NCBI GenBank assembly: GCA_002269645.1
Contig: NIVC01004997.1
Location: 1-28,906, forward strand
Reading direction: 5' to 3'
DNA from: Macrostomum lignano
Lineage: Eukaryota
DNA length: 28,906 bases
How positions within the stretch are numbered: the first letter of the stretch is position 1; every line of letters begins with the position of its first letter. A program made the translations under genes and the position numbers. A model generated the notes under the pieces. It did not search any database. It was not told the DNA's origin and saw only the letters and a program-made list of their open reading frames with translations. This document shows positions 1-19,822 of the stretch, in pieces.

Positions 1-1
1 G

Positions 2-330
2 CTTGTGCTTGAATATGCCGACTTAGTGCACAGTTCACTGCCTTGGAACTCCTGAACAGACTGCGGTCCCGGCGTCGTTAAATATCGCTTGATGGTCTTT
101 CTCTAATTGGCACTTTAAGCTTATGTAGTACGAGATGCGACGTACGCTTGTCGACATGATACAGTCCACTCTGACTTGTATTTGAAAAATAGTCTATGGT
201 CATAGACTGACTACCTCCACCCGAGCTGTTCTACCGAGACTGCGTGTTATTGCCTTTCTAGACGCATAGACTACTAGCCTATAGGGAAGTCAATGCATTC
301 ATTTGCAGTCGGGATGTAGTGGTATAAACA
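2..330 (+). mobile_element. Possible decayed LINE (CR1/L2-like) ORF2 C-terminal remnant
   Basis: Frame +2 begins LVLEYADLVHSSL, resembling the PxLEYAxxVW motif that follows the RT core in CR1/L2 elements. The downstream sequence has stops and frameshifts. Single weak motif. Confidence 0.2.
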
Positions 331-480
331 TGCGAGCGCCTGTTAAAGGAGGAGCCGCCCAAGTTTCTGAGCATCCCTACTTCAGAACAATATACCATTG
401 TATATATACTTTAGCACTTGCATTTCACAGTCAAGATTGCTTTAAAAATGTATGCACACTTCATATTAGTTAATATGTAG

Positions 481-835
481 TGCATGCGCCCTTGTCAGTT
501 GGCAGGGCGCGTTGCACTTTGGGGCTGGTTGGGGGGGTTGGCGGGCGTGGCAGGGTTTGGCCGCCGGCCGGGCTTTGCGCGTGCCCCTCCCCAGCCGTGC
601 CCTGCCCCGTGCTCAGCGGCTGGTTGGCTGCGGCCGGGCCAGCTTTGGCGCGGGTGCAGCCCCTCCCCCTTAGCGGGGTTTTGATTGGCTGGGCCGGCGT
701 GGTTTGTTTTGGTGAGCTTAGCCGGTGGGGCCGTCTGCCCCAGGGTTTGGGTGCTATTTATGGTGCGACTCTGGCTCTTGCCCACCTCCTGCGTGCTTTT
801 TGTGTTTTGGTGTGCTCCGAGAGTGCAAGCGCGAG
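481..835. promoter_or_regulatory. GC/CpG-rich island with inverted CCAAT and G-runs
   Basis: Abrupt switch from AT-rich to GC-rich sequence at about 481. Many CpGs, GATTGGCT at 683-690, and G tracts at 520-560. The overlapping ORFs have no convincing protein character. Confidence 0.35.
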
Positions 836-839
836 ACCT

Positions 840-1193
840 GATAAAAGAAACAGCAACATTAGCTACTTCGATAAAAGAAACAGCAACATTAGCTACTTCG
901 ATAAAAGAAACAGCAACATTAGCTACTTCGATAAAAGAAACAGCAACATTAGCTACTTCGATAAAAAGAAACAGCAACATTAGCTACTACTCGATAAAAG
1001 AACAGCAACATTAGCTACTTCGATAAAAGAAACAGCAACATTAGCTACTTCGATAAAAGAAACAGCAACATTAGCTACTTCGATAAAAGAAACAGCAACA
1101 TTAGCTACTTCGATAAAAGAAACAGCAACATTAGCTACTTCGATAAAAGAAACAGCAACAACATTAGCTACTTCGATAAAAGAAACAGCAACA
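840..1193. repeat. 30-bp minisatellite, about 12 copies (GATAAAAGAAACAGCAACATTAGCTACTTC)
   Basis: Directly visible near-perfect tandem copies with small indels near 965, 990 and 1160. Confidence 0.97.
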
Positions 1194-1356
1194 ATAGCCT
1201 AAATAGCGAGAAGAGTCTTGGAGAATTAAGAAGAAGTCGGAAACTGCGCTTGAGACCTGCGAATAATAAACGGTGAACAGTCATCTGGCCACTGGTAAGC
1301 CGCCTGCTGTTTGAGTCCTTTCTTTTCGGGAAGCTTGCTAGGCCGAATTCTTGCCA

Positions 1357-1654
1357 GAGCGTCATAACGCCGGGAGACCATATAGCTTCTGTAGTACGGT
1401 ACCGTTTACCATATATATTGCGTACGCCCTACGGTATAGAGAATAGAAGCACTCGAGAGTGTCACCACACCTCGAGCCGCAGCGTGAACTCTGAGTGTCA
1501 CAACACCAGAGGGATCGAATTATTATCGCAGAGCGTCGCCACGCCTGCTCGTCGTATTCATAAAAGTACAGACAGAGCGTCACAACGCCTGTTATATCAC
1601 ATATAATATATATGTACTCGGGACTGGGCACCCAAGCCGACCCGGGTCACAACA
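1357..1654. other. Segment with five dispersed copies of a 15-bp motif GAGYGTCRYMACRCC; LTR-like TGT...ACA ends possible at 1390-1654
   Basis: Motif copies at 1357, 1457, 1493, 1531 and 1575. TGTAGT at 1390 and ACAACA at 1649-1654. No TSD, PBS or PPT found. Confidence 0.4.
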
Positions 1655-2135
1655 AATACAAGCTAACTAAATAAACTGTTAGGATTTATTGTGATTGACT
1701 GTCAATCCCTCCTCCTTCAGTTCGTTGCGTGCTACGCGCGTGCAGGTGGCACTTGTGACTGTTGCTGAGTTTACTTAGATCTTGAAGCAGCTATGCTGCC
1801 AGAGAACTGTTTTAAAAATAGAACCTACACGCTTCACTACATATCCATAGCCACCCTTCTCTCTCTCTCAAAAAGTTTTTTCTTGAATGCAATTGCGCGT
1901 TTAATTATAGCTCATAAATTGAATTGGCTCCAGTGTACACCACACTATACACGGTAGCAAAGTGGGGTAATGTACACATCGCATCTGATATAGCTACGAG
2001 TAATGGATATTTTAGACGTTAGTTCCATGTTGGCCGATCCTGTGCCTTTATCTCACATTGCTATCGAATCTGCACTGATTAGCAATAGGCCTAATTGGCA
2101 TTGGCACTGTGACCAGTTTTTATCTGCATATCCAA

Positions 2136-2187
2136 ATGAATTGGCGCAATCAGGCCGCTGCCCTGATTGAACTGTGCCTCCTCCTAG
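2136..2187 (+). CDS. Putative first (signal-peptide) exon of the Cys-rich membrane protein gene
   Basis: ATG at 2136 gives MNWRNQAAALIELCLLL, followed by a perfect phase-1 donor CTAG|GTAAGT at 2188. Joined to the phase-1 acceptor at 3756/3757 it reads MNWRNQAAALIELCLLLVIRQLA, which is signal-peptide-like. The linkage is inferred. Confidence 0.35.
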
Positions 2188-2636
2188 GTAAGTTATAATT
2201 GGCCTGTAAATTGGCTTCGAGTTATCGCTTATTGTCAGGTAGCCGGCACTGGCATGAAAGCGGCGCGGCGGCGGCATCAAACGAACGCCCCGCGATGGCG
2301 AGTTCCAAACACACCGGGGGGGGGGGGTTCTACCCCTCCTTCCTTTGATCTGTGGGACGCCATAAACTCACGGATGCAAAAGAGGCTGCGTGGAAATCAC
2401 ACGCGATGCGGGCCCGTATAGGAAAGAACAGAAACACCGGCTGAACAGATAAGACCTAGAGGTGGTAAACTACTCGTAATTACGTACAGTGCGAATGCGA
2501 AGGTAAAAGAATCGCAGATGTTATCGATGCGTTTGTATTGTAAGGCACAATCTAATTTTGTTTTTTGTTCTTCTGTCCTCTTCGAAAAATCTAAGAGATC
2601 ATTGAGCAAATTTTCGAGGCTTTACTAAAAATGCAT

Positions 2637-2818
2637 GAGTATTTGGTAGGGCTACGGACTACCGGGTGAGTATTGGGTAGGGCTACGGACTACCGGGTGA
2701 GTATTGGGTAAAGTGGCAGACTACTGGGTGAGTATTGGGTAGGGCGGCAGACTACCGGGTGAGTATTGGGTAGGGCAGCAGACTACCGGGTGAGTATTGG
2801 GTAGGGCGGCAGACTACT
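2637..2818. repeat. 31-bp minisatellite, about 6 copies (GAGTATTGGGTAGGGCGGCAGACTACCGGGT)
   Basis: Directly visible tandem copies at 31-bp spacing. Confidence 0.95.
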
Positions 2819-3129
2819 GAAAGAGCAAAGTTAGCCAAAATACTGACAGTAATGGAGCCCGCTCTGAGCTAGGCAGACTGCCCTTGTCATACAATATCTG
2901 AAAGATAATTATGCAGTACCGGGCCTTACTATAGCAAATCGCCCCAGACTCCATCATCCCTCGAGGCTAGTCGGGAATCCATTTTACAGTAAGGCTGGCA
3001 TTACAGCTGAAGTGAATAACGAAATCACACGAAACTGTCACCATGGACGAGTAGAAAGTCAATCGGAACACACAAAACCGGTTTTGAATTATAACAGATT
3101 TTAGAGACACTGGAAACAGAGAGTGGAGA

Positions 3130-3440
3130 ACTCTGCAGAGCAAAGTCACTGCAGCTTCAAATGGTACTACTCATTGTACTCAACAGAAAATTCCGCCCTA
3201 GAAATGTCCAATCCAGAATTCAGCGCACCCTACCTACCTGTCACAGTTTAGATTAGCAAACCATAAACTGTGATGTGAAACAGTGAGGACTACAAGACAT
3301 AAAGATCCCTTACGAGAACAGGGCCTGTCCAAAGTGCCATGTGGGGTAGAAAGTGAAGTTCACTTCCTGTTCAAGTGCAGCTGGAACTTTTATAGTGCTC
3401 CCCGCGATAAATTTGAACTTAAAACCTCACTGCAGAGGAT
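3130..3440 (+). mobile_element. Decayed LINE ORF2 C-terminal fragment (Zn-knuckle-like region)
   Basis: One frame from 3238 reads LSQFRLANHKL*CETVR...PCGVESEVHFLFKC...Y..PR. This matches the FRLxxHxLxxETGR...CxxC...ExxxHFLxxC pattern at the end of many invertebrate LINE ORF2s. It contains an in-frame stop. Confidence 0.6.
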
Positions 3441-3756
3441 AAAAAGTTTACCTAATGACTCAAGAAGATGGATAAACAATGAAAGTTCTAGCAAAACTCT
3501 TCAAATACATGACGCTAGCTAGGATGCAGAAAAAAGCTTGAATAATCTGCTAGCGCACGAGATTTTATCTCGAGTCACTTCGAGAAATATTCTTCATTCC
3601 CTAACTTTCTGAATTTATTTTTTTACTGTATTAATCAGTTTGCGTTTGCTTCTGATAAATATTAACATAAAATATAAAAATCAGCACCTTCGGAGTTCGA
3701 ATTTATTAGCAATAAAACCTATCATAATCGAATTCGCAGGAGCTGCAGTCAACCAG

Positions 3757-4026
3757 TCATCCGGCAACTCGCGGAGCCTGAACGAACTCAAAGTGAGGTC
3801 ATGGGCCTGTCTCGTGGCGACCGGTGCAGCCGCAGCAGCCACAGCGCCTGTCAAAAGGGCCTGGAGTATCGCGGCATTGACTGCACCTGTCACAGGTGTC
3901 CGCAAGCCGGCGAGAGGCCCAGCCATCCGGTCCAGAGAGTCAGGCTGCGCTGCATCAGCCTCTTGAGTCTGTGCGAGCCACCCGAGGTCACAACTGCGAG
4001 TGTGTTTGACTTCGGAATGGAAATCG
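3757..4026 (+). CDS. Internal exon A: cysteine-rich module 1 of putative membrane protein
   Basis: Reads ...RCSRSSHSACQKGLEYRGIDCTCHRCPQAGERPSHPVQRVRLRCISLLSLCEPPEVTT..., the same Cys spacing as exon B. Candidate acceptors at 3739 and 3748 (phase 2) or 3756 (phase 1). Candidate phase-1 donors at 4000 (GTGTGT) or 4027 (GTCAGG). Confidence 0.6.
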
Positions 4027-5500
4027 GTCAGGAGAGGAGTGGGTCAGAAGAGAGTGGGTCAGGAGAGAGTGGGTCAGGAGAGGAGTGGGTCAGGAGAGAG
4101 TGGGTCAGGAAGAGTGGGTCAGGAGAGGAGTGGATCAGGAGAGGAGTGGATCAGGATCGAGGAGTGGGTCAGAAGAGAGTGGGTCAGGAGAGAGTGGGTC
4201 AGGAGAGAGTGGGTCAGGAGAGAGTGGGTCAGGAGAGGAGTGGGTCAGGAGAGGAGTGGATCAGGATCGAGGAGTGGGTCAGAAGAGAGTGGGTCAGGAG
4301 AGAGTGGGTCAGGAGAGAGTGGGTCAGGAGAGGAGTGGGTCAGGAGAGAGTGGGTCAGGAGAGAGTGGGTCAGGAGAGAGTGGGTCAGGAAAGAGTGGGT
4401 CAGGAGAGGAGTGGGTCAGGAGAGAGTGGGTCAGGAGAGGAGTGGGTCAGGAGAGAGTGGGTCAGGAGAGAGTGGGTCAGGAGAGGAGTGGGTCAGGAGA
4501 GGAGTGGGTCAGGAGAGAGTGGGTCAGGAGAGGAGTGGGTCAGGAGAGGAGGGGTCAGGAGAGGAGTGGATCAGGATCGAGGAGTGGGTCAGAAGAGAGT
4601 GGGTCAGAAGAGAGTGGGTCAGGAGAGAGTGGGTCAGGAGAGAGTGGGTCAGGAGAGAGTGGGTCAGGAGAGGAGTGGGTCAGGAGAGGAGTGGGTCAGG
4701 AGAGAGTGGGTCAGGAGAGGAGTGGGTCAGGAGAGGAGGGGGTCAGGAGAGGAGTGGATCAGGATCGAGGAGTGGGTCAGAAGAGAGTGGGTCAGGAGAG
4801 AGTGGGTCAGAAGAAAGTGGGTCAGGAGAGAGTGGGTCAGGAGAGGAGTGGGTCAGGAGAGAGTGGGTCAGGAGAGAGTGGGTCAGGAGAGGAGTGGGTC
4901 AGGAGAGAGTGGGTCAGGAGAGAGTGGGTCAGGAGAGAGTGGGTCAGGAGAGAGTGGGTCAGGAGAGAGTGGGTCAGGAAAGAGTGGGTCAGGAGAGGAG
5001 TGGGTCAGGAGAGAGTGGGTCAGGAGAGAGTGGGTCAGGAGAGGAGTGGGTCAGGAGAGAGTGGGTCAGGAAAGAGTGGGTCAGGAGAGAGTGGGTCAGG
5101 AGAGGAGTGGGTCAGGAGAGAGTGGGTCAGGAAAGAGTGGGTCAGGAGAGGAGTGGGTCAGGAGAGAGTGGGTCAGGAGAGAGTGGGTCAGGAGAGGAGT
5201 GGGTCAGGAAAGAGTGGGTCAGGAGAGGAGTGGGTCAGGAGAGAGTGGGTCAGGAGAGAGTGGGTCAGGAGAGGAGTGGGTCAGGAGAGAGTGGGTCAGG
5301 AGAGGAGTGGGTCAGGAGAGAGTGGGTCAGGAAAGAGTGGGTCAGGAGAGGAGTGGGTCAGGAGAGAGTGGGTCAGGAGAGGAGTGGGTTAGGAGAGAGT
5401 GGGTCAGGAGAGGAGTGGGTCAGGAGAGGAATGGGTCAGGAGAGAGTGGGTCAGGAGAGGAGTGGGTCAGGAGAGAGTGGGTCAGGAGAGGAGTGGGTCA
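4027..5500. repeat. 15/16-bp purine-rich minisatellite, about 95 copies (GGAGAG[G]AGTGGGTCA)
   Basis: Directly visible. It explains the three long + strand ORFs (EWVRR, RVGQE and SGSGE repeats). Confidence 0.98.
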
Positions 5501-6204
5501 GTGCTTTAATAAAAAGAGTAATTTAGCTGCATCATGAGGTCTATCTCAATAATAAAATCTGAGCAAGGCAGAAAGTGTTCGAAATTTACTTACTAAGTAG
5601 TGGAAAGGTGGAACGAACGCTGCTCAAACCGAGACAGACACGGGGACCCACATTTCTTACAGGTGCTCTATACACAACTTACAGGGTAAAGGTGCTGCAG
5701 CGAAGGCTGTTATTTTGTCTCAGTAGTGCTATTGATTGAGCTGAAAGTGTTGAAAGCACAATTAAAGATGAGTTCAATAAGAGGGCTCTGTCCGCTAAAC
5801 GCTGATTGAAAAACAGGTTAATATGTGGGGAGGCGAAACTTCCAGCTAAAACGTATAAGCGACTGCATCGCAATTAATGACTTTGATTACAGGTAAACAG
5901 CAGTCACGAGAGAATTTCCAAGAAAATATTTCTTTAGCAATTCGGGTCTTTGTTTGTTGCTTTTGACTGACTTGTGAAAATTTGAGACAACGTCAGGGCT
6001 CCCTTTTATTATTATCGATTTGAGCTGCCCTGTAAGCACCTGCTCCAGTAGAAGGGACCGCGGAATTGTTTTCGAAGAAGTTTTAGACTGTCTTGACACT
6101 CCGTATGTGAATGTTTCCTTGTAATTAATAGTTCACTGCAAACTTTTATCGACTGCACGCTGATCTGTGCCATAGCGACCACTTAATCTGAGTCAGTTAT
6201 CAGC

Positions 6205-6830
6205 TGATCTAAGCCAAAGACACGGGTCTGGGCCATAGACATTAGCTTACCTAAGCCAAAGGGTCTGGGCCATAGGCACTATAGCTTATCTAAGCCAAAG
6301 ACACGGGTCTGGACCATTTTTTTTAGAGGCAGGGGGTTTGTGTGCACCCTGGCGCACTTTAAGCGACATAGGCACACAACCGGCGAGAGGCATTACTGCC
6401 CATTCCGCCGACTCCCCTGAGCAGGCATACAAGCGCGCGGATACGTACGCAGGCACACACTCACACAGGAGTGTACAGCGGCCCTAACTTTATTTTATCG
6501 TTAGGCATTTACACTTCACTGCGCCTTGGGCGGTTGGCTCTCAAGGCCGTTAATTGCACGAGCAGAGCCAAGCCGAGATTCCAATTCAGCCCCAAATTAA
6601 TGTGACTGCACTTGGAATCGAGCCTGGGCCGCTGGTACACCAGAGCCTGCGCTAGACCGCTGGGCTACGGCCCCCCAAAAGGTCTGGACCATAGAGATTA
6701 GCTTATCTAAGCCAACGGGTCTGGGCCATAGACATTATAGCTTATCTAAGCCAAAGACATGGGTCTGGGCCATAGACACTATAACTTATCTGGGCCATAG
6801 ACACTATAGCTTATCTGGGCCATAGACACA
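6205..6830. repeat. About 42-bp degenerate tandem repeat (TTAGCTTATCTAAGCCAAAGACACGGGTCTGGGCCATAGACA) split by a SINE
   Basis: About 3 units at 6205-6317 and about 2 units plus two shortened 25-bp units at 6681-6830. Confidence 0.9.
6318..6676 (-). mobile_element. tRNA-derived SINE with poly(A) tail and 12-bp TSD
   Basis: Minus strand starts GGGGGGCCGTAGCCCAGCGGTCTAGCGC (A box TAGCCCAGCGG) and has B box GGCTCGATTCC. The A-tail appears as a T-run at 6318-6324. TSD GGTCTGGACCAT lies at 6306-6317 and 6681-6692. Confidence 0.85.
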
Positions 6831-7856
6831 AAGAGACGGTATGTTCTGCACCATAAACAACAGCTGATTTGGGTGATTGATAAATTTCGTAGAAAGTCGC
6901 ACTTTTGAAGCAAGTTCACATATTTTGATAATCTACAGTAGCACTCATTTTTCTGAAGTTTGCAAGGAGCTTAGAGTGAGCGCCAAGCGTGTGGTGCATA
7001 AATACCGGTACATAGTCATGAATACATAGTAAAACGACGGAGACGGACGGGAGTGCAATCTAATTGTAACTGAGGTGAGAAGTGAGAGCTCAAGAACTTT
7101 CCGAGTTAACCAAACCGTCTGCCCCAGTCGGTTGGAAATCAAGCTGACAAGCTCTAAGAGGTACTCGACACGGAGACGACTGGGTCGAGAGAGCACTTTG
7201 AGCTAATATGACTCATGAAGTAGTCATTAACAATGAGAGCATATGCCGCATGCCAAATGCGGTCGTGGGTTCCCCAGCGCGAAGGAATCTGCGGGTATTT
7301 TTAGCCCAATTATGCTCCTGCCGTTCAGATATCTGGTCTAAATGTCTGAGCAGTGTCTGAGCACTAATCCTTGTGGAGTTCAATAGAGCAGAACAAGAAA
7401 TACGAGTCCGGAGTCTGCAAACCGCCGGGGTCTGAGTCGTCTGAAAGATATTCGCTATTACCAGATACAGCATATAATGCCACATGCAGCTAAAGTCCTA
7501 CCTGAATCAAGCGTGTGGATGTCGGTAACAGTTTACGGTCATTAGCGTTGACCAAGAATTGCACTGTATGGAAATGTGTATGAGATAATTGGTTTTCACT
7601 TCTGCAAAGGATTTATCAGGTCAGCTAAAGCCCTACACGTATCTTCAGGTGAGCTAGCCCTACAGGTAACACCACTACCTAACACCAAATTTAGTATGCA
7701 GGTAAGATAAGACAGAAAAGTCAGGTACCGTGAACCACATCCGGGACGATAAGGTCACAAATCATCGATTATCAGATGGAATGAAACCACCAAATAATCA
7801 GATTGGATTTCATCAGATGTGCTAACCTGCGATGAACTCAATACTCAAATTTGCAG

Positions 7857-8120
7857 GCCCCCTCAACCAGCTGTCCTGCCAGAGGGCCTACCTGGGTAGC
7901 GAGGCAGCCTGCGGCACGGCTGCGGTCCGAGGCTGCCCGGCCGACAGCTACCTGACCCGGGGTTGCTCCTGTGAGATGTGCCCGAGCCGAACGACTTTCA
8001 GCAGCGGCTTCGAACTGGACTGCCTGCAGCTGCTGGGCTTCTGCCAAGGTGCCCAACTTCTTGCGGGCGGCGAGACTGGGACAAATCCTGACCAGGCGAC
8101 GACTACCCTCAGCGAACCAA
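7857..8120 (+). CDS. Internal exon B: cysteine-rich module 2 plus Thr-rich stalk
   Basis: Branch-like GCTAAC at 7821, acceptor TTTGCAG| at 7856, donor A|GTGTGA at 8121. The exon is 264 nt, phase 1-1. Reads GPLNQLSCQRAYLGSEAACGTAAVRGCPADSYLTRGCSCEMCPSRTTFSSGFELDCLQLLGFCQGAQLLAGGETGTNPDQATTTLSEP. Confidence 0.65.
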
Positions 8121-8193
8121 GTGTGATTGTTAGGACACTATCGACAGCTGTTTCCGGTTTGTCAGTTATGGATGAGCTTCTTAGTGCCTAATG

Positions 8194-11100
8194 CCTCCCG
8201 GTTCCCTCCCGGTTCCCTCCCGGTTCCCTCCCGGTTCCCTCCCGGTTCCCTCCCGGTTCCCTCCCGGTTCCCTCCCGGTTCCCTCCCGGTTCCCTCCCGG
8301 TTCCCTCCCGGTTCCCTCCCGGTTCCCTCCCGGTTCCCTCCCGGTTCCCTCCCGGTTCCCTCCCGGTTCCCTCCCGGTTCCCTCCCGGTTCCCTCCCGGT
8401 TCCCTCCCGGTTCCCTCCCGGTTCCCTCCCGGTTCCCTCCCGGTTCCCTCCCGGTTCCCTCCCGGTTCCCTCCCGGTTCCCTCCCGGTTCCCTCCCGGTT
8501 CCCTCCCGGTTCCCTCCCGGTTCCCTCCCGGTTCCCTCCCGGTTCCCTCCCGGTTCCCTCCCGGTTCCCTCCCGGTTCCCTCCCGGTTCCCTCCCGGTTC
8601 CCTCCCGGTTCCCTCCCGGTTCCCTCCCGGTTCCCTCCCGGTTCCCTCCCGGTTCCCTCCCGGTTCCCTCCCGGTTCCCTCCCGGTTCCCTCCCGGTTCC
8701 CTCCCGGTTCCCTCCCGGTTCCCTCCCGGTTCCCTCCCGGTTCCCTCCCGGTTCCCTCCCGGTTCCCTCCCGGTTCCCTCCCGGTTCCCTCCCGGTTCCC
8801 TCCCGGTTCCCTCCCGGTTCCCTCCCGGTTCCCTCCCGGTTCCCTCCCGGTTCCCTCCCGGTTCCCTCCCGGTTCCCTCCCGGTTCCCTCCCGGTTCCCT
8901 CCCGGTTCCCTCCCGGTTCCCTCCCGGTTCCCTCCCGGTTCCCTCCCGGTTCCCTCCCGGTTCCCTCCCGGTTCCCTCCCGGTTCCCTCCCGGTTCCCTC
9001 CCGGTTCCCTCCCGGTTCCCTCCCGGTTCCCTCCCGGTTCCCTCCCGGTTCCCTCCCGGTTCCCTCCCGGTTCCCTCCCGGTTCCCTCCCGGTTCCCTCC
9101 CGGTTCCCTCCCGGTTCCCTCCCGGTTCCCTCCCGGTTCCCTCCCGGTTCCCTCCAGGTTCCCTCCCGGTTCCCTCCCGGTTCCCTCCCGGTTCCCTCCA
9201 GGTTCCCTCCAGGTTCCCTCCCGGTTCCCTCCCGGTTCCCTCCCGATTCCCTCCCGATTCCCTCCCGATTCCCTCCCGGTTCCCTCCCGGTTCCCTCCAG
9301 GTTCCCTCCCGGTTCCCTCCAGGTTCCCTCCAGGTTCCCTCCAGGTTCCCTCCAGGTTCCCTCCAGGTTCCCTCCCGGTTCCCTCCCGGTTCCCTCCGGT
9401 TCCCTCACGGTTCCCTCCCGGTTCCCTCCCGGTTCCCTCCCGGTTCCTCCCGGTTCCCTCCCGGTTCCCTCCCGGTTCCCTCCAGGTTCCCTCCCGGTTC
9501 CCTCCCGGTTCCCTCCAGGTTCCCTCCCGGTTCCCTCCCGGTTCCCTCCCGGTTCCCTCCCGGTTCCCTCCCGGTTCCCTCCCGGTTCCCTCCCGATTCC
9601 CTCCCGGTTCCCTCCCGGTTCCCTCCAGGTTCCCTCCCGGTTCCCTCCCGATTCCCTCCCGGTTCCCTCCCGGTTCCCTCCCGGTTCCCTCCAGGTTCCC
9701 TCCCGGTTCCCTCCCGGTTCCCTCCCGGTTCCCTCCAAGTTCCCTCCAGGTTCCCTCCAGGTTCCCTCCCGGTTCCCTCCCGGTTCCCTCCCGATTCCCT
9801 CCCGGTTCCCTCCCGGTTCCCTCCCGGTTCCCTCCAGGTTCCCTCCCGGTTCCCTCCAGGTTCCCTCCAGGTTCCCTCCAGGTTCCCTCCAGGTTCCCTC
9901 CCGGTTCCCTCCCGGTTCCCTCCCGGTTCCCTCCCGGTTCCCTCACGGTTCCCTCCCGGTTCCCTCCCGGTTCCCTCCCGGTTCCCTCCCGGTTCACTCC
10001 CGGTTCCTCCCGGTTCCCTCCCGGTTCCCTCCCGGTTCCCTCCCGGTTCCCTCCAGGTTCCCTCCCGGTTCCCTCCAGGTTCCCTCCCGGTTCCCTCCCG
10101 GTTCCCTCCCGGTTCCCTCCCGGTTCCCTCCCGGTTCCCTCCCGGTTCCCTCCCGGTTCCCTCCAGGTTCCCTCCCGGTTCCCTCCCGGTTCCCTCCCGG
10201 TTCCCTCCCGGTTCCCTCCCGGTTCCCTCCCGGTTCCCTCCCGGTTCCCTCCCGGTTCCCTCCCGGTTCCCTCCCGGTTCCCTCCCGGTTCCCTCCCGGT
10301 TCCCTCCCGGTTCCCTCCCGGTTCCCTCCCGGTTCCCTCCAGGTTCCCTCCCGGTTCCCTCCCGGTTCCCTCCCGGTTCCCTCCCGGTTCCCTCCCGGTT
10401 CCCTCCCGGTTCCCTCCCGGTTCCCTCCCGGTTCCCTCCCGGTTCCCTCCCGGTTCCCTCCCGGTTCCCTCCCGGTTCCCTCCCGGTTCCCTCCCGGTTC
10501 CCTCCCGGTTCCCTCCCGGTTCCCTCCCGGTTCCCTCCCGGTTCCCTCCCGGTTCCCTCCCGGTTCCCTCCCGGTTCCCTCCCGGTTCCCTCCCGGTTCC
10601 CTCCCGGTTCCCTCCCGGTTCCCTCCCGGTTCCCTCCCGGTTCCCTCCCGGTTCCCTCCCGGTTCCCTCCCGGTTCCCTCCCGGTTCCCTCCCGGTTCCC
10701 TCCCGGTTCCCTCCCGGTTCCCTCCCGGTTCCCTCCCGGTTCCCTCCCGGTTCCCTCCCGGTTCCCTCCCGGTTCCCTCCCGGTTCCCTCCCGGTTCCCT
10801 CCCGGTTCCCTCCCGGTTCCCTCCAGGTTCCCTCCCGGTTCCCTCCCGGTTCCCTCCCGGTTCCCTCCCGGTTCCCTCCCGGTTCCCTCCCGGTTCCCTC
10901 CCGGTTCCCTCCCGGTTCCCTCCCGGTTCCCTCCCGGTTCCCTCCCGGTTCCCTCCCGGTTCCCTCCCGGTTCCCTCCCGGTTCCCTCCCGGTTCCCTCC
11001 CGGTTCCCTCCCGGTTCCCTCCCGGTTCCCTCCCGGTTCCCTCCCGGTTCCCTCCCGGTTCCCTCCCGGTTCCCTCCCGGTTCCCTCCCGGTTCCCTCCC

Positions 11101-11900
11101 GGTTCCCTCCCGGTTCCCTCCCGGTTCCCTCCCGGTTCCCTCCAGGTTCCCTCCCGGTTCCCTCCCGGTTCCCTCCCGGTTCCCTCCCGGTTCCCTCCCG
11201 GTTCCCTCCCGGTTCCCTCCCGGTTCCCTCCAGGTTCCCTCCCGGTTCCCTCCAGGTTCCCTCCCGGTTCCCTCCCGGTTCCCTCCAGGTTCCCTCCAGG
11301 TTCCCTCCAGGTTCCCTCCCGGTTCCCTCCCGGTTCCCTCCCGGTTCCCTCCCGGTTCCCTCCCGGTTCCCTCCCGGTTCCCTCCCGGTTCCCTCCCGGT
11401 TCCCTCCCGGTTCCCTCCCGGTTCCCTCCAGGTTCCCTCCCGGTTCCCTCCCGGTTCCCTCCCGGTTCCCTCCCGGTTCCCTCCCGGTTCCCTCCGGTTC
11501 CCTCCCGGTTCCCTCCCGGTTCCCTCCCGGTTCCCTCCCGGTTCCCTCCCGGTTCCCTCCCGGTTCCCTCCCGGTTCCCTCCAGGTTCCCTCCCGGTTCC
11601 CTCCCGGTTCCCTCCAGGTTCCCTCCCGGTTCCCTCCCGGTTCCCTCCCGGTTCCCTCCCGGTTCCCTCCAGGTTCCCTCCCGGTTCCCTCCCGGTTCCC
11701 TCCCGGTTCCCTCCCGGTTCCCTCCCGGTTCCCTCCCGGTTCCCTCCCGGTTCCCTCCAGGTTCCCTCCCGGTTCCCTCCCGATTCCCTCCCGGTTCCCT
11801 CCCGGTTCCCTCCCGGTTCCCTCCAGGTTCCCTCCCGGTTCCCTCCCGGTTCCCTCCCGGTTCCCTCCAGGTTCCCTTCCCGGTTCATTCCCTCCCGGGT
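8194..11900. repeat. 11-bp satellite, about 335 copies (CCCTCCCGGTT)
   Basis: Directly visible. Perfect for the first 960 bp or so, then scattered CCAGG, CCGATT and CACGG variants and 1-bp deletions. It explains all the 500-1270 aa ORFs here. Confidence 0.99.
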
Positions 11901-12526
11901 TCAATTGGGAATTCGGTTTATGCCGTTGGGAACTGTAATTAGTGGACAATATTAATCATTGAAAGTGATTACAGAATCTAAATTTCATGGCGTCACAATG
12001 TCTGGATCTCTTTGCCATGACACAGGTGTTTTTTCACCCGTCAATCAGGCCATTGTTTGGAACTATCGACTTCAATTCAAAATCGGAAGCAAAAATCAGA
12101 AAGACAGTAAAATTTCGATCGCTGAAAACATTTTTTCTGAAAAACTTGAATTGCAATTCTGCACTCAAGAACCGACGTGCGGCACCTGGGTTACTGAGGA
12201 CGATGAAACAAACAATGATTTCTTTAATTTCCTGATCATTAGGGAAAGCAGACAAGGGAATTTCAAATTCAGGTGGCAATCTCCAATATTGCTAGCTGAC
12301 AATTCCTGCCCTTAATGAGATGACCGCTAATAATGAGAGTGCGTGCTCACATAGGAAATCACAACAATAGCTAGCAGGCAACTTCATTTTGAAAAATTAG
12401 TTTCGCGTTGCGTGGTGACCTACAAATCGACTAGTACATGTTTTTACATGCGTATTTTTATAATTTCGCAAGCCCAAAAAATGCCCTGTTTCCTTTTTTC
12501 CTATCATGATAAACACCAGCGCTGTT

Positions 12527-12887
12527 GGGTGTTGGCTATAAAATCTGTGCTAGTGGGGTGTTGGCTATAGAATCTGTGCTAGTGGGGTGTTGGCTATAAA
12601 ATCTGTGCAAGTGGGGTGTTGGCTATAAAATCTGTGCTAGTGGGGTGTTGGCTATAAAATCTGTGCTAGTGGGGTGTTGGCAATAAAATCTGTGCTAGTG
12701 GGGTGTTGGTTATAAAATCTGTGCTAGTGGGGTGTTGGCTATAAAATCTGTGCTAGTGGGGTGTTGGCTATAAAATCTGTGCTAGTGGGGTGTTGGCAAT
12801 AAAATCTGTGCTAGTGGGGTGTTGGCAATAAAACCTGTGCTAGTGGGATGTTGGCAATAAAACCTGTGCTAGTGGGGCTATAAAATC
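12527..12887. repeat. 29-bp minisatellite, about 12 copies (GTGTTGGCTATAAAATCTGTGCTAGTGGG)
   Basis: Period 29 measured from ATCTGTGC at 12601, 12630 and 12659. Confidence 0.96.
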
Positions 12888-12945
12888 CGATTTAGAGGTT
12901 GGCTGTAATTTTTTTCATTTAAGCCAATTCAATTTAAACTCGCAG

Positions 12946-13115
12946 GCAACACTTGGCGTGTGCTGCTCATCATCCTCTGCGTTCTGCTCATCGCCACTCC
13001 CATTGTCGCAGTGTTTGCTGTTCAGAGGCTTCAGCAGCAGCGCTACGCCTCAGCCTCGCTTAACGATGCGGCGGCCAGAGTGCCTCTGGATGACAAGAGT
13101 GGAGCCAGCATCTGA
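12946..13115 (+). CDS. Terminal exon C: single transmembrane helix and short cytoplasmic tail
   Basis: Acceptor AAACTCGCAG| at 12945, phase 1. Reads (S/G)NTWRVLLIILCVLLIATPIVAVFAVQRLQQQRYASASLNDAAARVPLDDKSGASI*, with a 21-aa hydrophobic stretch followed by polar and basic residues. Missed by the ORF track, which reports another frame. Confidence 0.7.
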
Positions 13116-13226
13116 TTGTCGAGGCAAAGCGAGCTCCATCAACTCTACGGCAAAAGATGTATTTTTTCTTATCAATTTGCACAGACTGCATGTATGGTTT
13201 TGTACTGAAGCATGTGCTGAAATGAG

Positions 13227-13232
13227 AATAAA
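13227..13232 (+). terminator. Candidate polyadenylation signal AATAAA for the membrane protein gene
   Basis: First AATAAA after the exon C stop, about 110 nt downstream. Confidence 0.45.
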
Positions 13233-13260
13233 ACACAACAGATGCTACTGTAATGCCACA

Positions 13261-13565
13261 TAATATTAATAATAATATAATTTTTGATTACGCTTGCTCT
13301 AATGGGCAGTTGTGCAACCGACAGCTCAGCCGCAGCTATTGCGCGGCGCATCTGAAGGCTGCGTACGGCTGTTTAGTCAAAAGACTTGGGGGTCGCCACA
13401 CATATCCTCAATTACCTCAGCTAATCCTGGTACCCATTTTACAGCTGGGTGAACTGAACAGTTGTGTCTTGCTCAGGGGCACAAATTGTTTCGAGTGGGT
13501 CGAGAATCGAACCCCCGACCGTTCAGTCGTGATTCCGACGCTCTGACCACTCGGCTACAAGCAGT
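13261..13565 (-). mobile_element. Second tRNA-derived SINE family with conserved-type core and (ATT)n-like tail
   Basis: Minus strand reads GCTTGTAGCCGAGTGGTCAGAGCG (A box) ... GGGGTTCGATTCTCG (B box), then TGTGCCCCTGAGCAAGACAC ... CACCCAGCTGTAAAATGGGTACC, with a tail of AT/ATT repeats at 13261-13285. No TSD seen. Confidence 0.8.
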
Positions 13566-13807
13566 ATACAAGGCGTAGCTGAAGGGCAGGCAAGGTGGCC
13601 GTAGAACCCTAACCTAAAATTTATGTTTATGTGAAACAGCTTATATAGCTAGTATCTGCTTTTCAAAAATTTCGATTGCGAAAATGCTACTATCAGTAGC
13701 AAGTAGTGAAATTTTGTTCGCGTGAGCAGAATAATTAATTAATAATTGAAACAGGATTATCGAATAGTTAGAGCTAGATAAATTTAAATTTTAACTATTT
13801 TACCAAG

Positions 13808-14225
13808 CTGTCTCATTGTGTAACAGCTCATCCATCTCATCTCCCCAACTGTCTCATTGTGTAACAGCTCATCCATCTCATCTCCCCAGTATCAGCTCAT
13901 CTATCTCATCTCCCCAGTATCAGCTCTTCTATCTCATCTCCCCAGTATCAGCTCATCTATCTCATCTCCCCAGTATCAGCTCATCCATCTCATCTCCCCA
14001 GTATCAGTTCATCTATCTCATCTCCCCAGTATCAGCTCATCCATCTCATCTCCCCAGCTGTCTCATTGTGTATCAGCTCATCCATCTCATCTCCCCAGTA
14101 TCAGTTCATCTATCTCATCTCCCCAGTATCAGCTCATCCATCTCATCTCCCCAGCTGTCTCATTGTGTATCAGCTCATCAATCTTATCTCCCTAACTGTC
14201 TCAATTTATCCTGACAGCTCATCTA
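13808..14225. repeat. 28-bp pyrimidine-rich minisatellite (TATCAGCTCATCCATCTCATCTCCCCAG) with longer units carrying CTGTCTCATTGTG
   Basis: Directly visible, about 13 units. It explains the SSISSPQ-type ORFs. Confidence 0.93.
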
Positions 14226-14824
14226 TCCTGACAGAAAGAACAGATTCTGTCAGACTCCCTTGGAGAATCAAACATCCGGGTAAGCGGGCCTCATCCGTGA
14301 ACAGGACCAGCAACTTTCTTGCAGAAGCTGGGAGAGAAGTTCTGGCAGCAGCTGGCAGAAATTAGAGGGCAGAGTTACTCTACAACAGTAGTTATGCGAA
14401 CGTAATCGCAAGAATCCAGATATACAAACAGGCGAGAGTCAGTCAAAGCTACAGGCCGAAAAATCGATTTAAAAAAAGAAAGGATAGAAAAACTGCGTCT
14501 CTCAAGGAGTGTACGAAAATTATAGAAACTGACTCTCAGTCGGATTTTCAGCCTTGCCATCTGAGTGGCATAACTGAACTGAGCTGAAGATAATTGACGC
14601 GTGCCAACAAGGAACAACAAGGGCGTTGAGAAGAAATAATAAATAACAGATGTGATTCTTGGCCTGCAGAGGGTGCGCGTCTGCCTTCACGGGGGTAATA
14701 ACCGTAAACTATTGCGACACCGCGAGCAGAGCACAAATTGGAGGTTTAAAAGCTAGCCATCCCGCGACAACCCCCAACGCAGACGCCACCCTGCCACCCC
14801 TAACACACTTTGTACGCTCTGCCC

Positions 14825-15101
14825 ACAAAGCACACCTATGAGTGAAGGTAGCTGCAATGCTGACAGTAGCCGTTGAGTTGCAGTGTTAATTCCGCTGAAT
14901 AGCAATTTCGAAGGGACAAATTTGAGTATTGATCTCGATCAATTCCACCAACTAGCGATATTAACAAAGTCAACACAGGCAGACGTGACGTGCATCATAG
15001 TGACGGCAGTGACGCCTGCAGCCTGATGCTTCTGTGCGCTGGAGGAAATAACGAAGCTGCATGTCTGGAGCGATGATGCCAGTGCAAATAGTTTAGAAAA
15101 A
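14825..15101 (+). repeat. Short copy of an unclassified dispersed repeat (longer copy at 23192-24170)
   Basis: Three blocks match, in the same order, 23216-23356, 23615-23684 and 24121-24170 (for example GGTAGCTGCAATGCTGA, GGCAGTGACGCCTGCAG, CGAAGCTGCAT..GATGCCAGTG). Confidence 0.75.
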
Positions 15102-15659
15102 GCTTGCAAAACGAGCGATTGTTAATAGGATCGATGTTATCTGGTCACGACAAGCAGTCACGCTGATGCGACCGGCCCAGTGCGAGCCGCCGGTATGGCA
15201 GGACAACCCGGCACTCGGCAAGCGACCCAGTGGGACAACTAAGTGGGGCGTACAGTGGGCGGTGTGCACACTTGCGACTGCCTGTTGAGAGCAGTCGGTA
15301 AATATTTTTATTTTCAATTTACAATGAATTATGATCTGATTTTTGATGAAAAGCGTGATTCTGTACTCGTAATACTTTATTTAGCCTTAATAAGAACCAT
15401 TCTTCCATCCCAATCGAGGCCGCCCGGTGATCGTCCGGCAATTTAACTTTGGCATGTTTTATGTTCAAGCAGCTTAATTTAATAGCTCTGCTTGTTCAGC
15501 TTAGCGGGAGAACCATTTTTATCCCAATATTAGGTTAGGTTGGAGTAGAGCTGAAAGCCCCCGGAGACCAACTTTTTGTGTTGGCAGTCGAAAGAAGATT
15601 AGAAACATCAAATTGACAATAAATATGAAATATTTGCGCTTCTGTCATGAATGTGTTAT

Positions 15660-16457
15660 TGTGACTTGAGTGCACTATTCTACGCCGGGCCAGTCTGGCC
15701 GGCCTCTCCCCCCCTCCTCAGATATTTTCTGACTCACCCACCTTCACTTCTCTCTCTGCCTAGGCCTTGTCTGTTTATTCACCCCCCCATTCTTTGCGTG
15801 CGACCCCACCCCATTCTTTTGTAAGCCTAGCTGCCCCGCCCCTGTAGTTTGTGATTGGCTGCCAGTCCCAGTCTGCCGTGCTGCGCTCTCGGCGATTAGC
15901 TGGCACTTCTCATTTTGGTCCCATGTCGTTTTCTAAACTCCCTGTTGCCGCCTTCATCCCGCGCCCTCGACCCCAGTTTGCTGCCTATAAATTCAGACCC
16001 CGTGAGACCCCATTTCCGTCGTTCTCGTCGCTCCCCGGTGATTGTTGCCAGTGTTGGTTGCTATTACACTAAATTGTCCTTAATTGTCCTAATTGTTCTA
16101 AATAAATAGAAATACAAATAGAGAATACCAAGAAGACTCCCACCGCTCTGTCGGCGTTGTTTCCGGGTTGAACGACCGAAATCGCGGCTGGTAAGCCTTC
16201 CACCTTGCAAGTCATTTGGGGTCTGCATCTGTACTAGGCACCTTAGAGGGATTAAGTGCGTCGTACGCCGGTCCCACCCCAAGCAGCTTTGCGTCGTACG
16301 CGAGACTGTAGGCTATCGTGCGTCGCACGCTCGTGCAGCCTGGTCCCGACGGACACCGCGTCGTACGCGTGTCAGTGGAGGACCGCAGCCAGGGTTAGTA
16401 CGCGAACCCGGGTCTGGAAAGGGGCACGAAGGGACCGAGCCCGTGAGCCCCATCACA
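15660..16457 (+). promoter_or_regulatory. LTR/promoter-like segment: GC box, inverted CCAAT, TATA, AATAAA and a GCGTCGTACGC array
   Basis: CCCCGCCC at about 15834, GATTGGCT at about 15853, CCTATAAATT at about 15982 and AATAAA at about 16102. TGTGA (15660) and TCACA (16453-16457) form a 5-bp inverted pair, but there is no TSD. Confidence 0.3.
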
Positions 16458-16939
16458 AAACTTCTATAAGCTTTGTCTTGCTTTGCCATCTATTTTGAAT
16501 TGCTGCTCAACCTGCTGGCTTAAAATGCCCCTTAGAAGTAGAGTTACGGACTCCTCACTGGGTGAAACTAATGTCTGCAATGCTCGACCTCATGCTGTTG
16601 GCCAGAAACCCATGATCGATCTGAAAAATGCTGCAGCAACTGTTACAGCTTTGAGTTGGTGTCCACTAGAATAACAGAATAATTTTTATACCTGGATGGC
16701 GCTGTGCAGCTGGGATATTTCTAAGCAGAGCAAAACTAGTTACTGATTTTTTAGATATTTTGTTTTGGCAACGCTGTTTTAACCTGGAATTTAAACCCGC
16801 AGAATTTGGAACCCTGTATCTATTTTGCTTCTTAGATTTAAAGAAATCGAACAAAAACTTATTTAAATAGTGATGATAGAAGTTAGTAAAAACCAAATTA
16901 GGATTACCATTTCGATTCCTTTGGTTTATTTCAGCAGGA

Positions 16940-17215
16940 TTGTATTGCCTCTACTTTTCTCTACTTCTCTTTCATCTGTCCTCTCTCCATCCATCTATTA
17001 ACTATTCCTCACACTCCCTTCCATCTGTCTACTCTCCCCTCTCTCCCTTTGTTCATTCTGTCCTCCCTCCCTCCCTTCTATCTGTCTACTTTCACTCTGT
17101 TATCCCTGTCTTCCTCTTCTGCTGTACCCTCTCTCCATCATCCCTCTCTTGCCTCTGCCCTGCCTCCCTTCCATCTGTCCTCTGCTGCTCTCTCTCTCTG
17201 CCTTGTCTACCGCTT
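16940..17215. repeat. Degenerate CT-rich low-complexity tract
   Basis: Pyrimidine-dominated, with CTCT, CCTCCC and CATCTGT submotifs. Confidence 0.8.
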
Positions 17216-17692
17216 TTTCTTTGACTTTTTTGACTTTGAAACTTGAAAATTTACAGGTAATGTTAGGAAATAGTTAAAGGTGTTAGTGTAAAATTTGAAT
17301 AGGATTGGTTGAAGGTTTGAAGACTTGAATTTAGGAAGTTTTAAGGTAACCTTAAGTCTTTTCCATAGTGAATTTAGTGTGGGTGTAAATTTTAATGAAG
17401 TTTGTAATGTTTGTAAGTTTCTAACTCACAGTGTAATGTGAAACTATACATTTGCTAAAAATATCAACCCTTTCGTTTCAGAGGACACCCAAATCAGATT
17501 GATATAAGCAGATAGAATCGTTCATCATTGTAAATGCAAGACAGGACAAGCATGCAAAACAGCGTGGGGCGTCGTTGTTGAAAGGCTAAACTTTGTACTT
17601 AAAACGTAAAAAATATAGTAACTGTAACATTCACATGGGTATTAATGGTATAATAAGTATATTTAGGAACGAGTTATTAAATTAAATTAAAG

Positions 17693-19178
17693 AGCTGGAG
17701 AGACTTCGTTTGAGAAGGCGACCAACCTGCGAAGCAGAGGAGGTCTTGGGTCGCGTGGCCTGGTCTGCCATCAGCGCTTACTTGGGCGAAAGCGGCGCAT
17801 TCTGCTAAATCTGGCAGGCGACTCTAAGGACGAGCGCAGCAATGAGCTGCATGAGTTTTTCGACGCCAATGTTAACGCACCGCCACTTCTCTGCCAGACG
17901 ATCTGACGCTGCCGCCGGAGATGCCGTTGCTGGAAGAGGAGAGCTTCAGCGTTGCACCAGTCAACACAGCCGACGCTGTGTGGCTCCACCAACAGTCACC
18001 GGGCGGGAAAAAGCTGTGACCGGACAAGTTGCATTGAGGCATTGCTCATACAACCCTGGCCATTGAGAAGGCACCTAAAGAGTGGACCACGGCACACATT
18101 TTCGCTATTCCAAAGAAGCCAGGCACCACAGGGCTAGAGAAGCACTGAGGCATCTGCCTTCAGTCTTTCGCTGCGAAGCTGTTTAATCGGCTGCTGCTAT
18201 CGCGGTTGCTGCAGGTGCTGGATCCGTACCTACGTCTTGAGCAGGTCAGCTTCCGGCTCCATCGCGGCACTGTGACGCAGATCCTAGCTCTTCGTCGAGT
18301 CATCGAGGAGACGCGGATATGCCAGACGATCCTGATTGTTATCTTCATAGATTTCAAAAAGGTATTCGACTCGCTCGTCAGGTCCATACTCCCAGAGGTG
18401 CTCCGTGCGAACACAGTGTCAGAGTAGCTTGTCTACGCCATCACGGCAATGTGTACCGTGATACAAAAGCTGTTGTTTCAACACCGGAAGGTCTATCTGA
18501 CTGCTCCAGAGAGACTCGCGCCGCTGCGGATTGCTCTTCATACCAACGACGACGGCTTTCTGCTACTGCACGGCTTTCTGCTTCGGTCAGCGACAACCGG
18601 AGAGGCGGCTCAGCGTGTTGGCTTCGCCGATGATCTCGCCCTGCGGTCATTAACTGTTGAAGTCGCCCAGCGACAACTGGATAAGCTGGTTGCGTCGAGT
18701 GTCGGCCTGTTGGTCAACATGCAAAAGACCATCGTGCTCTGCTGGCCGGACGACATTGTGTCTGCAATTTTGTGCAGATGGACAGGCGACAGAGCTTCTG
18801 TGTTGTCAGCAGTTCATCTATCACCTTGGCGGTCTGGCTTCCGACATCCGCGAGAATCTGCAGCGTCGCTGCAGGCTTGCCAATAGCCTACCTAACTACC
18901 AGTGGATGGCCCTGCTCCAGGTGGTGGTCGAGACTATCTTGTTATACATCACTGAGACCTGGACGCAGAGCGCTTCATCTGCGCTGAGTCGCACTGCCCA
19001 CAGCCGGTGCGGGGAAGTCCTGCTGCTGAAGCAGCAGGTGCACCCTCCCTACCGGCGGGAACAGGCGCGCACTTGGCTTTTCGTTCACAGCCTGCTGGTG
19101 CTGGCTGACGCCGGCGTCTCGGATTTGGTCGGCGGCGTGGCCTGCATTCGCGACCTGGCCCAGAAGCGCGCCCTGTGA
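17693..19178 (+). mobile_element. 5'-truncated, decayed RTE-like LINE: linker, reverse transcriptase and C-terminus
   Basis: APKEWTTAHIFAIPKKPG...*GICLQSFAAKLFNRLLLSRL...LDPYLRLEQVSFR...QILALRRVIEE...FIDFKKVFDS, then GFADDLAL (YADD box), VGLLVNMQKT and ETILLYITETW. Multiple stops and frameshifts. Confidence 0.92.
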
Positions 19179-19822
19179 CGCTGCCTTCTAAAGACTCTAA
19201 CAGCGTATTTTGTTGTTCGTCGTTGGCAAAGTCAAATCGGCAGGAGGAAACTGCAAGGCTTAGGCTCAAGCCAGGCGGACACGAGCTGAGAAGACACAGA
19301 CAGCGCATGGCGGAGAAACTTTTCTCCAACACACCCTACCCAATCGTAGAAGACAATTGACAGGTAAGCAGCAAAGTTAGAGGCAAAAGAGTCATCGAAG
19401 CGTGAAGCTTAAGCCCACGCAGGGTTGCGACTCATAGCTACTAGACGCATCGGGGGTGGGGGGGGGTAAACAGTCGTCGGGACTTTTGCCGTCCCACGCT
19501 ACAAGTGAAAGCTCAAGCGCCTTTGAAAAAGAAAAAAAGAAGAATTCTAGCAGTTCTCGGATTGTCTTTTATATTTCTTTGTCTGCGCAGAAACTTTTTG
19601 AATAAAATTTTTACCACCCACGTCCTACTGCCACCAATGTAAGCGTCTATTGGTGCAGAGACAAACTGCCAACTCAACTGCCTGCTGCAACCCAGGACGG
19701 TACGTAAAACGAACAGCTCAGAGATGCTAAACGGCCTAAATAGGCAAAGCCTTCGCAAATACACAACACGAGTCAGAGCGCTGAGCTCAACTTGATAAAA
19801 AATCACATAATTCAGTGTAAAA

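Follow-up and report, generated by a model that had tools for sequence, protein, structure and literature searches.

A 28,906-nt stretch of the Macrostomum lignano genome (contig NIVC01004997.1 of assembly GCA_002269645.1, positions 1 to 28,906 of the forward strand; here called the window) raises the question of whether the region from 2136 to 13232 encodes a membrane protein with a duplicated cysteine-rich module, as a sequence-only reading of this DNA had proposed, and, if it does, whether the gene is new, whether this copy of it is intact, and to which family the module is related. The answer that we consider probable is that the window carries one of several near-identical copies of an annotated gene, BOX15_Mlig018243g1, and that this particular copy is damaged.

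The gene and its sister locus

When the spliced model was searched against 5.8 billion clustered proteins, a single match was obtained, a 262-aa M. lignano protein (PAA82741.1; UniProt A0A1I8HF80; here P0001), with 100% query coverage and ~97% identity outside two gaps. The NCBI title of this protein is "hypothetical protein BOX15_Mlig018243g1," and its UniRef name is "TNFR-Cys domain-containing protein." Its locus, which we call the sister locus (L001, on contig NIVC01000455.1 of the same assembly), is collinear with window positions 1 to 15108 at a DNA identity of 94 to 99%, and the differences between the two are large indels in minisatellites and transposon-like inserts. The P0001 coding sequence was rebuilt exactly from four GT-AG exons on L001 (10001 to 10052, 12237 to 12503, 15684 to 15983, and 18082 to 18251). 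The window equivalents of these exons are 2136 to 2187, 3740 to 3999, 7857 to 8156, and 12946 to 13115, and the coding identity of the two copies is 97.95% over 782 aligned bases. Based on the collinear locus, the shared exon-intron structure, and a DNA identity of >95%, we assign the window copy to the same gene, BOX15_Mlig018243g1. Because L001 is collinear and nearly identical, the window is another copy of the same locus, which may be an allele, a homeologue, or a recent duplicate. This is consistent with the 180 Mb of non-repetitive duplicated blocks at ≥95% identity in the source assembly, Mlig_3_7 (PMC5730564).

The Mlig_3_7 annotation was built from RNA-seq and transcript assemblies with StringTie, TACO, and TBONE (PMC5730564). 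The gene is real, and its splice pattern is backed by the transcript-based model at the sister locus. The sequence-only reading had described a gene of several exons that encodes a small type I membrane protein, and the four-exon model and the hydropathy profile bear this out. It had also called the gene hidden, but the sister locus, 96 to 99% identical, already carries the RNA-seq-derived PAA82741.1. The gene has already been deposited there, and the window copy is an ordinary duplicate that is probably decaying. A full-text literature search for "Mlig018243" found no paper, and Rfam and tRNA scans of the window gave no matches.

All features of the gene lie on the + strand. The coding part of exon 1 (2136 to 2187) starts with the ATG, encodes the hydrophobic N terminus MNWRNQAAALIELCLLL(G), ends in phase 1 at a GTAAGT donor, and is 100% identical to L001 10001 to 10052. 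By the sister model, exon 2 (3740 to 3999), which encodes the first cysteine-rich module (module A), begins at a position that aligns to L001 12237 and has 260 nt, which is not a multiple of 3, compared with 267 nt in L001. Its donor (4000 to 4005) is GTGTGT where L001 has GTGAGT, and the T at +4 makes it a weaker match to the GTRAGT consensus. Exon 3 (7857 to 8156) encodes the second module (module B) and the Ser/Thr-rich stalk in 300 nt, runs from phase 1 to phase 1, and is followed after 8156 by the annotated donor G/GTTTGT. The coding part of exon 4 (12946 to 13115) contains the transmembrane helix WRVLLIILCVLLIATPIVAVFAV (~12954 to 13022), a 30-aa tail, and the TGA stop codon (13113 to 13115). 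An AATAAA (13227 to 13232) lies 112 nt past the stop codon, at the same distance as in the sister locus. The two copies have in common the four exons, the sequence of exon 1, the acceptor regions, the distance from stop codon to poly(A) signal, and collinear flanks. In contrast, the window copy alone has a 7-bp deletion in exon 2, the T for A at donor position +4, and nine amino acid replacements, and it differs further in its much longer intronic minisatellites, a 1.18-kb upstream insertion, and its other transposon content downstream.

The intact protein has a hydrophobic segment at its N terminus (residues 7 to 21, with a Kyte-Doolittle hydropathy of up to 2.5 over residues 7 to 17) and a single strong transmembrane segment (residues 210 to 232, with a hydropathy of 3.18 over the 19 residues from 212 to 230), which is followed by QRLQQQR. 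AlphaFold2 modeled P0001 with a mean predicted local distance difference test score (pLDDT) of 50 and an ectodomain value of ~40, and it was confident only for a helix at residues 207 to 250 (pLDDT of ~80). Module B, modeled with a four-row alignment, gave a mean pLDDT of 39. The confidence of these models is low because there are too few homologues. Based on hydropathy and AlphaFold, the protein has a hydrophobic putative signal, one helix, and basic residues after that helix, which is the arrangement of a type I single-pass membrane protein. The intact ectodomain contains 16 cysteines (8 + 8), one NQS sequon, and the Ser/Thr-rich stalk, and the tail has ~30 residues. The stalk, the transmembrane helix, and the short tail had all been predicted to follow the modules, and they do so in the four-exon model and the hydropathy profile. 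The four coding exons of the intact gene would then specify a 262-aa type I membrane protein consisting, in order, of a short signal peptide, two tandem eight-cysteine modules, the Ser/Thr-rich stalk, one transmembrane helix, and a cytoplasmic tail.

In the six-frame translation of the 28.9-kb window, the motifs CxCxxCP and LxCxxLLxxC occur twice each, and only in exons 2 and 3. Both motif pairs are on the + strand (3882 to 3974 and 7964 to 8044), and they agree in order and nearly agree in spacing. The combined cysteine pattern has two matches, at the positions where the sequence-only reading had placed them, compared with 0 in 200 composition-preserving block shuffles. Module B (7877 to 8044, or 7910 to 8044 without its first cysteine) has eight cysteines, C-x10-C-x7-C-x9-CxCxxCP-x12-C-x6-C, while seven are left in module A of the window (3825 to 3974), C-x7-C-x10-CxCxxCP-x16-C-x6-C. 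The intact module, in module B as well as in module A of the sister locus, has eight cysteines, C-x10/11-C-x7-C-x9/10-C-x-C-x2-C-x13/17-C-x6-C. The spacing first proposed for the module captured the shared pattern but omitted the first cysteine. Since both repeats share the eight-cysteine form, that form is probably ancestral and the seven-cysteine module A of the window derived.

The exon products of modules A and B are similar by BLASTP with an E value of 0.002 and 28% identity over 36 residues. This direct similarity is weak, and the signal therefore lies mainly in the cysteine framework. In the intact copy, each module is on a symmetric phase-1 exon (267 and 300 nt for exons 2 and 3, respectively), as had been proposed, and the two modules represent an internal exon duplication. 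The weak similarity is also what would be expected if there were no gene here and two open stretches resembled each other by chance. However, the outcome of the shuffles and the match of the locus to an annotated, transcript-derived spliced coding sequence with conserved GT-AG sites reduce the probability of this explanation to almost nothing.

The 7-bp deletion in exon 2

Exon 2 of the window differs from that of L001 by one indel only, the loss of 7 bp (CTCTGCC in L001) between window positions 3792 and 3793. The intact protein reads ...NELKLCREVMG... at this stretch, and the cysteine in it is the first of module A. In the window, the codon for this cysteine (in LCREV) is lost and the frame is shifted. 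With the annotated splicing (2187>3740), a premature TGA is reached at 3964 to 3966, which gives a product of 92 aa. Compared with the intact paralogue, the deletion is frame disrupting and is uncompensated under the annotated splicing. Between the two copies, the coding sequence is no better conserved than the introns (97.95% versus 95 to 99.3%). The coding differences comprise 9 nonsynonymous and 5 synonymous changes, and the resulting NG86 ratio of nonsynonymous to synonymous substitution (dN/dS) of 0.55 would be compatible with relaxed constraint, although the changes are too few to decide. From these comparisons of sequence, we take the window copy to be, most likely, a null allele or a young pseudogene. 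Module A has lost its first cysteine through the deletion, and under the annotated splicing translation would stop after 92 codons. The exon 2 donor is also weakened by the change from GTGAGT to GTGTGT, and at best the copy could yield an N-terminally altered, seven-cysteine variant through an alternative acceptor at 3757. Near-identical copies of this kind illustrate the continuing decay of duplicates in M. lignano, a hidden polyploid. As a damaged duplicate of a deposited, uncharacterized M. lignano gene, the window copy has slight importance outside annotation.

Several points count against such decay. The dN/dS value of 0.55 comes from 14 changes and does not distinguish relaxed from moderate constraint. 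By count of nucleotides, acceptor 3757 could also give an isoform that stays in frame. An error of assembly might account for the deletion, though two other gene models carry it as well. These models, UniProt A0A1I8IY03 (P0002) and A0A1I8HD72 (P0003), come from another annotation and read exon 2 in the deleted frame, and because they do so, a one-off assembly error is unlikely.

The alternative acceptor, AG/T at 3755 to 3757, is the third AG in a run and falls 17 nt past the annotated acceptor. The 17-nt shift of the acceptor and the 7-nt deletion add up to 24 nt, and acceptor 3757 therefore restores the frame exactly. The price is an altered N-terminal stretch of 13 residues and a module A with an odd number of cysteines (seven). 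The sequence-only reading had been built on this acceptor. The splice sites that it named are present in the window (AG before 3757, 7857, and 12946; GT after 3999, 4026, and 8120), and the model that joins 2136 to 2187, 3757 to 3999, 7857 to 8120, and 12946 to 13115 is open in frame over 242 aa. However, two of its junctions, 2187>3757 and 8120>12946, differ from the annotation, which has 2187>3740 and 8156>12946, and the donor at 4026 that it offered as an alternative turned out to be the first unit of a 15-nt minisatellite. The choice of acceptor 3757 in effect concealed the 7-bp frameshift, and the deletion was missed. Picking splice sites so as to keep a frame open can mask a frameshift.

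We consider it unlikely that the window copy is functional and is spliced 2187>3757, 3999>7857, and 8120 (or 8156)>12946 to encode a surface receptor or adhesion protein of 242 to 254 aa. A copy spliced in this way would be open from ATG to stop with GT-AG at all junctions, the shift of the acceptor would exactly offset the deletion, and P0002, as a second annotation, reads exon 2 in the same frame. However, P0002 is a prediction fused to an upstream G protein-coupled receptor (GPCR) and not a transcript. The sister locus has an identical acceptor region, and its transcript-based model uses the first AG (equivalent to 3740); 3757, as the third of successive AGs, is without a pyrimidine tract of its own. 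Module A would have seven cysteines, compared with eight in module B and in the intact module A. Finally, the product is missing from all of the protein collections searched; among 15 billion proteins, none of five conceivable window isoform products is present.

P0002 is 100% identical to window positions 3741 to 3998 and joins an upstream GPCR of the rhodopsin type to exon 2, a fusion that is probably a gene prediction artifact provoked by the frameshift. The same fusion could be taken to mean that exon 2 is part of the upstream GPCR transcript and not of a separate gene, given that P0002 continues from the 7tm_1 GPCR into exon 2, read in the frame of the module, and that M. lignano produces polycistronic precursor RNAs (PMC5730564). 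We regard this as highly improbable. P0002 is partial at both ends and stems from an older, more error-prone annotation, while the RNA-seq-based annotation has a separate gene that starts at the exon 1 ATG. Moreover, a cysteine-rich module placed after the C-terminal tail of a GPCR would be cytoplasmic, which makes no sense topologically. The GPCR neighbor is found at L001 1174 to 6829 (rhodopsin family; 7tm_1, E = 2.7e-28), a position beyond the left end of the window.

P0003 is a 95-aa protein named "Protein phosphatase 1 regulatory subunit 35," and it is actually an exon 2 fragment of the cysteine-rich gene. In addition to the 7-bp-deleted frame, it has two further internal frame changes. 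It comes either from a third copy with heavier damage or from a contig of low quality, and its name seems wrong.

Possible relation of the cysteine module to TNFR domains

The sequence-only reading had assigned the module to no family. UniProt, in contrast, labels the protein TNFR-Cys, and this automatic name implies a match to the PROSITE TNFR-Cys profile (PS50050), a label that was not reproduced here. The likeness to the TNFR cysteine-rich domain (CRD) is in cysteines 3 to 8 of the modules, which read C-x4/5-Y-x4-C-x-C-x2-C-x13/17-C-x6-C, in A1-B2 order and with roughly the TNFR spacing. Type I topology and tandem CRDs of ~40 residues are likewise shared with the TNFR superfamily, and "CxxCP...TFSS" in module B resembles a common TNFR sequence, "CxxCPxGTFS." The differences are equally specific. 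The gap from the tyrosine to C2 is one residue short in the modules, the loop from C4 to C5 has 13 to 17 residues versus 7 to 11 in the TNFR CRD, each module has two extra N-terminal cysteines, and the module ends in a hydrophobic LxCxxLLxxC, which TNFR CRDs lack. P0001 is also without a death domain, for which a tail of ~30 aa is far too short, and no TRAF-type motif was recognized in the 30-aa tail.

A series of comparisons speaks against kinship with TNFR. No Pfam family, including PF00020 (TNFR_c6), matched the spliced model or either exon product at an E value of ≤10. By contrast, four human control ectodomains scored 68 to 104 bits against Pfam TNFR_c6. No PDB sequence was matched by phmmer or hmmsearch with the full model, a four-sequence profile, or module B alone. 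We built a hidden Markov model (HMM) of the TNFR CRD from 13 CRDs of four human receptors, verified with Pfam as TNFR_c6, and with the --max option this HMM gave ~6 bits in a local match only. When the module alignment was compared by hhalign with 10 Pfam-verified CRDs, the probability was 2.6% over 14 columns. The strict PROSITE-style pattern (after PS00652: C-x(4,6)-[FYH]-x(5,10)-C-x(0,2)-C-x(2,3)-C-x(7,11)-C-x(4,6)-[DNEQSKP]-x(2)-C) matched all four controls but had no match in P0001, where the modules fail it by having x4 where x5-10 is needed and x13/17 where x7-11 is needed. The conserved LxCxxLLxxC end also looks helical, which is unusual in a TNFR CRD. A relaxed TNFR pattern (gap of ≥3, loop of up to 18) fits cysteines 3 to 8 of both modules as well as the controls, but spacing alone is no proof of homology. 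These tests fail to confirm the TNFR-Cys label, and the doubt about TNFR that was voiced at the outset is not unreasonable.

Other cysteine-rich families were rejected as well; EGF, laminin-EGF, somatomedin B, PSI, VWC, granulin, and furin-like repeats were set aside by their cysteine spacing together with the negative Pfam scan. When P0001 was compared exhaustively by phmmer with 1.84 billion representatives, all matches were M. lignano proteins, apart from one spurious match to the transmembrane region, and a profile search with the module alignment retrieved P0003 only. Judged by its cysteine spacing and these searches, the module appears to be TNFR-like in framework and otherwise a sequence orphan, rather than a demonstrated TNFR CRD. 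The protein as a whole is an uncharacterized type I membrane protein that is cysteine rich, restricted to its lineage, and TNFR-like in framework.

It is possible, though we lean away from it, that the eight-cysteine module forms a genuinely new, disulfide-rich fold found in Macrostomum alone and that the TNFR-Cys label is a false positive caused by spacing. The Pfam, PDB, CRD HMM, hhalign, and strict-pattern tests were all negative, the phmmer relatives among the 1.84 billion cluster representatives are from M. lignano only, and the two extra N-terminal cysteines and the LxCxxLLxxC end are foreign to TNFR. However, cysteines 3 to 8 keep the TNFR A1-B2 order, with a tyrosine after C1 and a CxCxxC(P) center, and the UniProt name implies an above-threshold match to a PROSITE profile. 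Very divergent invertebrate TNFR CRDs often escape Pfam, which also counts against a new fold. The conjunction of all of these departures, an undescribed fold confined to Macrostomum, a TNFR-Cys label that is an artifact of spacing, and a window copy that is expressed through acceptor 3757, strikes us as improbable. If it were true, the locus would be a young case of a frameshift rescued by a splice site shift. The residual interest of the gene is in whether the module is a very divergent but genuine TNFR CRD or a new fold, and the TNFR-Cys label merits a structural check.

Both TNF ligands and proteins of the TNFR type occur in M. lignano (PMC7519573; bioRxiv 10.1101/2024.07.27.603686). Bertevello et al. 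(2020, PMC7519573) reported one canonical NGFR-like TNFR with a conserved death domain, plus TNF ligands, from this species, and in a 2026 preprint 16 "wengen-type" receptors, 1 "grindelwald-type" receptor, and 6 ligands were counted in its proteome. The number of TNFR-like receptors in M. lignano is disputed, with 1 in PMC7519573 and 17 in the 2026 preprint. Like the SmTNFR/NGFR-like receptors of platyhelminths, the present protein comes from a flatworm, has type I membrane topology, and carries cysteine-rich repeats. In contrast to the canonical platyhelminth TNFR, which has a death domain in M. lignano, it has two aberrant modules and a 30-aa tail. Its modules may be disulfide-braced extracellular binding modules, and the protein, presumably without intrinsic signaling, might act as a coreceptor, a decoy, or an adhesion-type surface molecule. 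Its ligand could conceivably be one of the TNF-like ligands of M. lignano.

Minisatellites, insertions, and neighboring ORFs

All three introns of the cysteine-rich gene contain tandem arrays. In intron 2, a 15-nt minisatellite, GGTCAGGAGAGAGTG, with ~95 copies (4026 to 5501, + strand), starts 27 nt past the exon 2 donor. No stop codon interrupts this array in any of the three frames, and long artifactual open reading frames (ORFs) result. Each 15-nt unit carries a G/GTCAGG pseudo-donor, and the array is ~2 times as long as that of the sister locus (L001 12530 to 13257). Most of intron 3 is an 11-nt minisatellite, CCTCCCGGTTC, with 336 copies and 97% matches (8194 to 11886, + strand). It has an extreme strand asymmetry, with a GC content of ~0.70 and a GC skew of ~-0.5, and gives artifactual ORFs of >1,200 aa on both strands. 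Intron 3 is 4,789 nt long in the window, compared with 2,098 nt in L001. Further intronic minisatellites are at 12527 to 12877 and 2636 to 2817 (29-nt unit, 12 copies, and 31-nt unit, 6 copies, respectively).

Upstream of the gene, the ~1.18 kb from 476 to 1654 is absent from the sister locus, in which positions L001 9523 and 9520 abut. This segment contains a 30-nt minisatellite (840 to 1198, 11.8 copies). Lying 0.5 to 1.7 kb upstream of the ATG, the insert may affect the promoter of the window copy.

Downstream, window regions 15108 to 19704, 27433 to 27858, and 28418 to 28732 (- strand) are missing from the sister locus. By eye, we take the ORFs in these regions to be fragments of retrotransposon reverse transcriptase/endonuclease and of a mariner-type transposase, an assignment that is unconfirmed; the three pieces tested had no Pfam match at an E value of ≤0.01. 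Two long paralogous ORFs, of 370 and 295 aa, lie 5.6 kb apart on the + strand (19823 to 20935 and 25457 to 26344). One of them has a weak match to Pfam Laminin_G_3 (concanavalin A-like lectin; E = 2.9e-4, below the gathering score). Both match a single copy at L001 26457 to 27688 with an identity of 86 to 89%, which is well below that of the rest of the locus.

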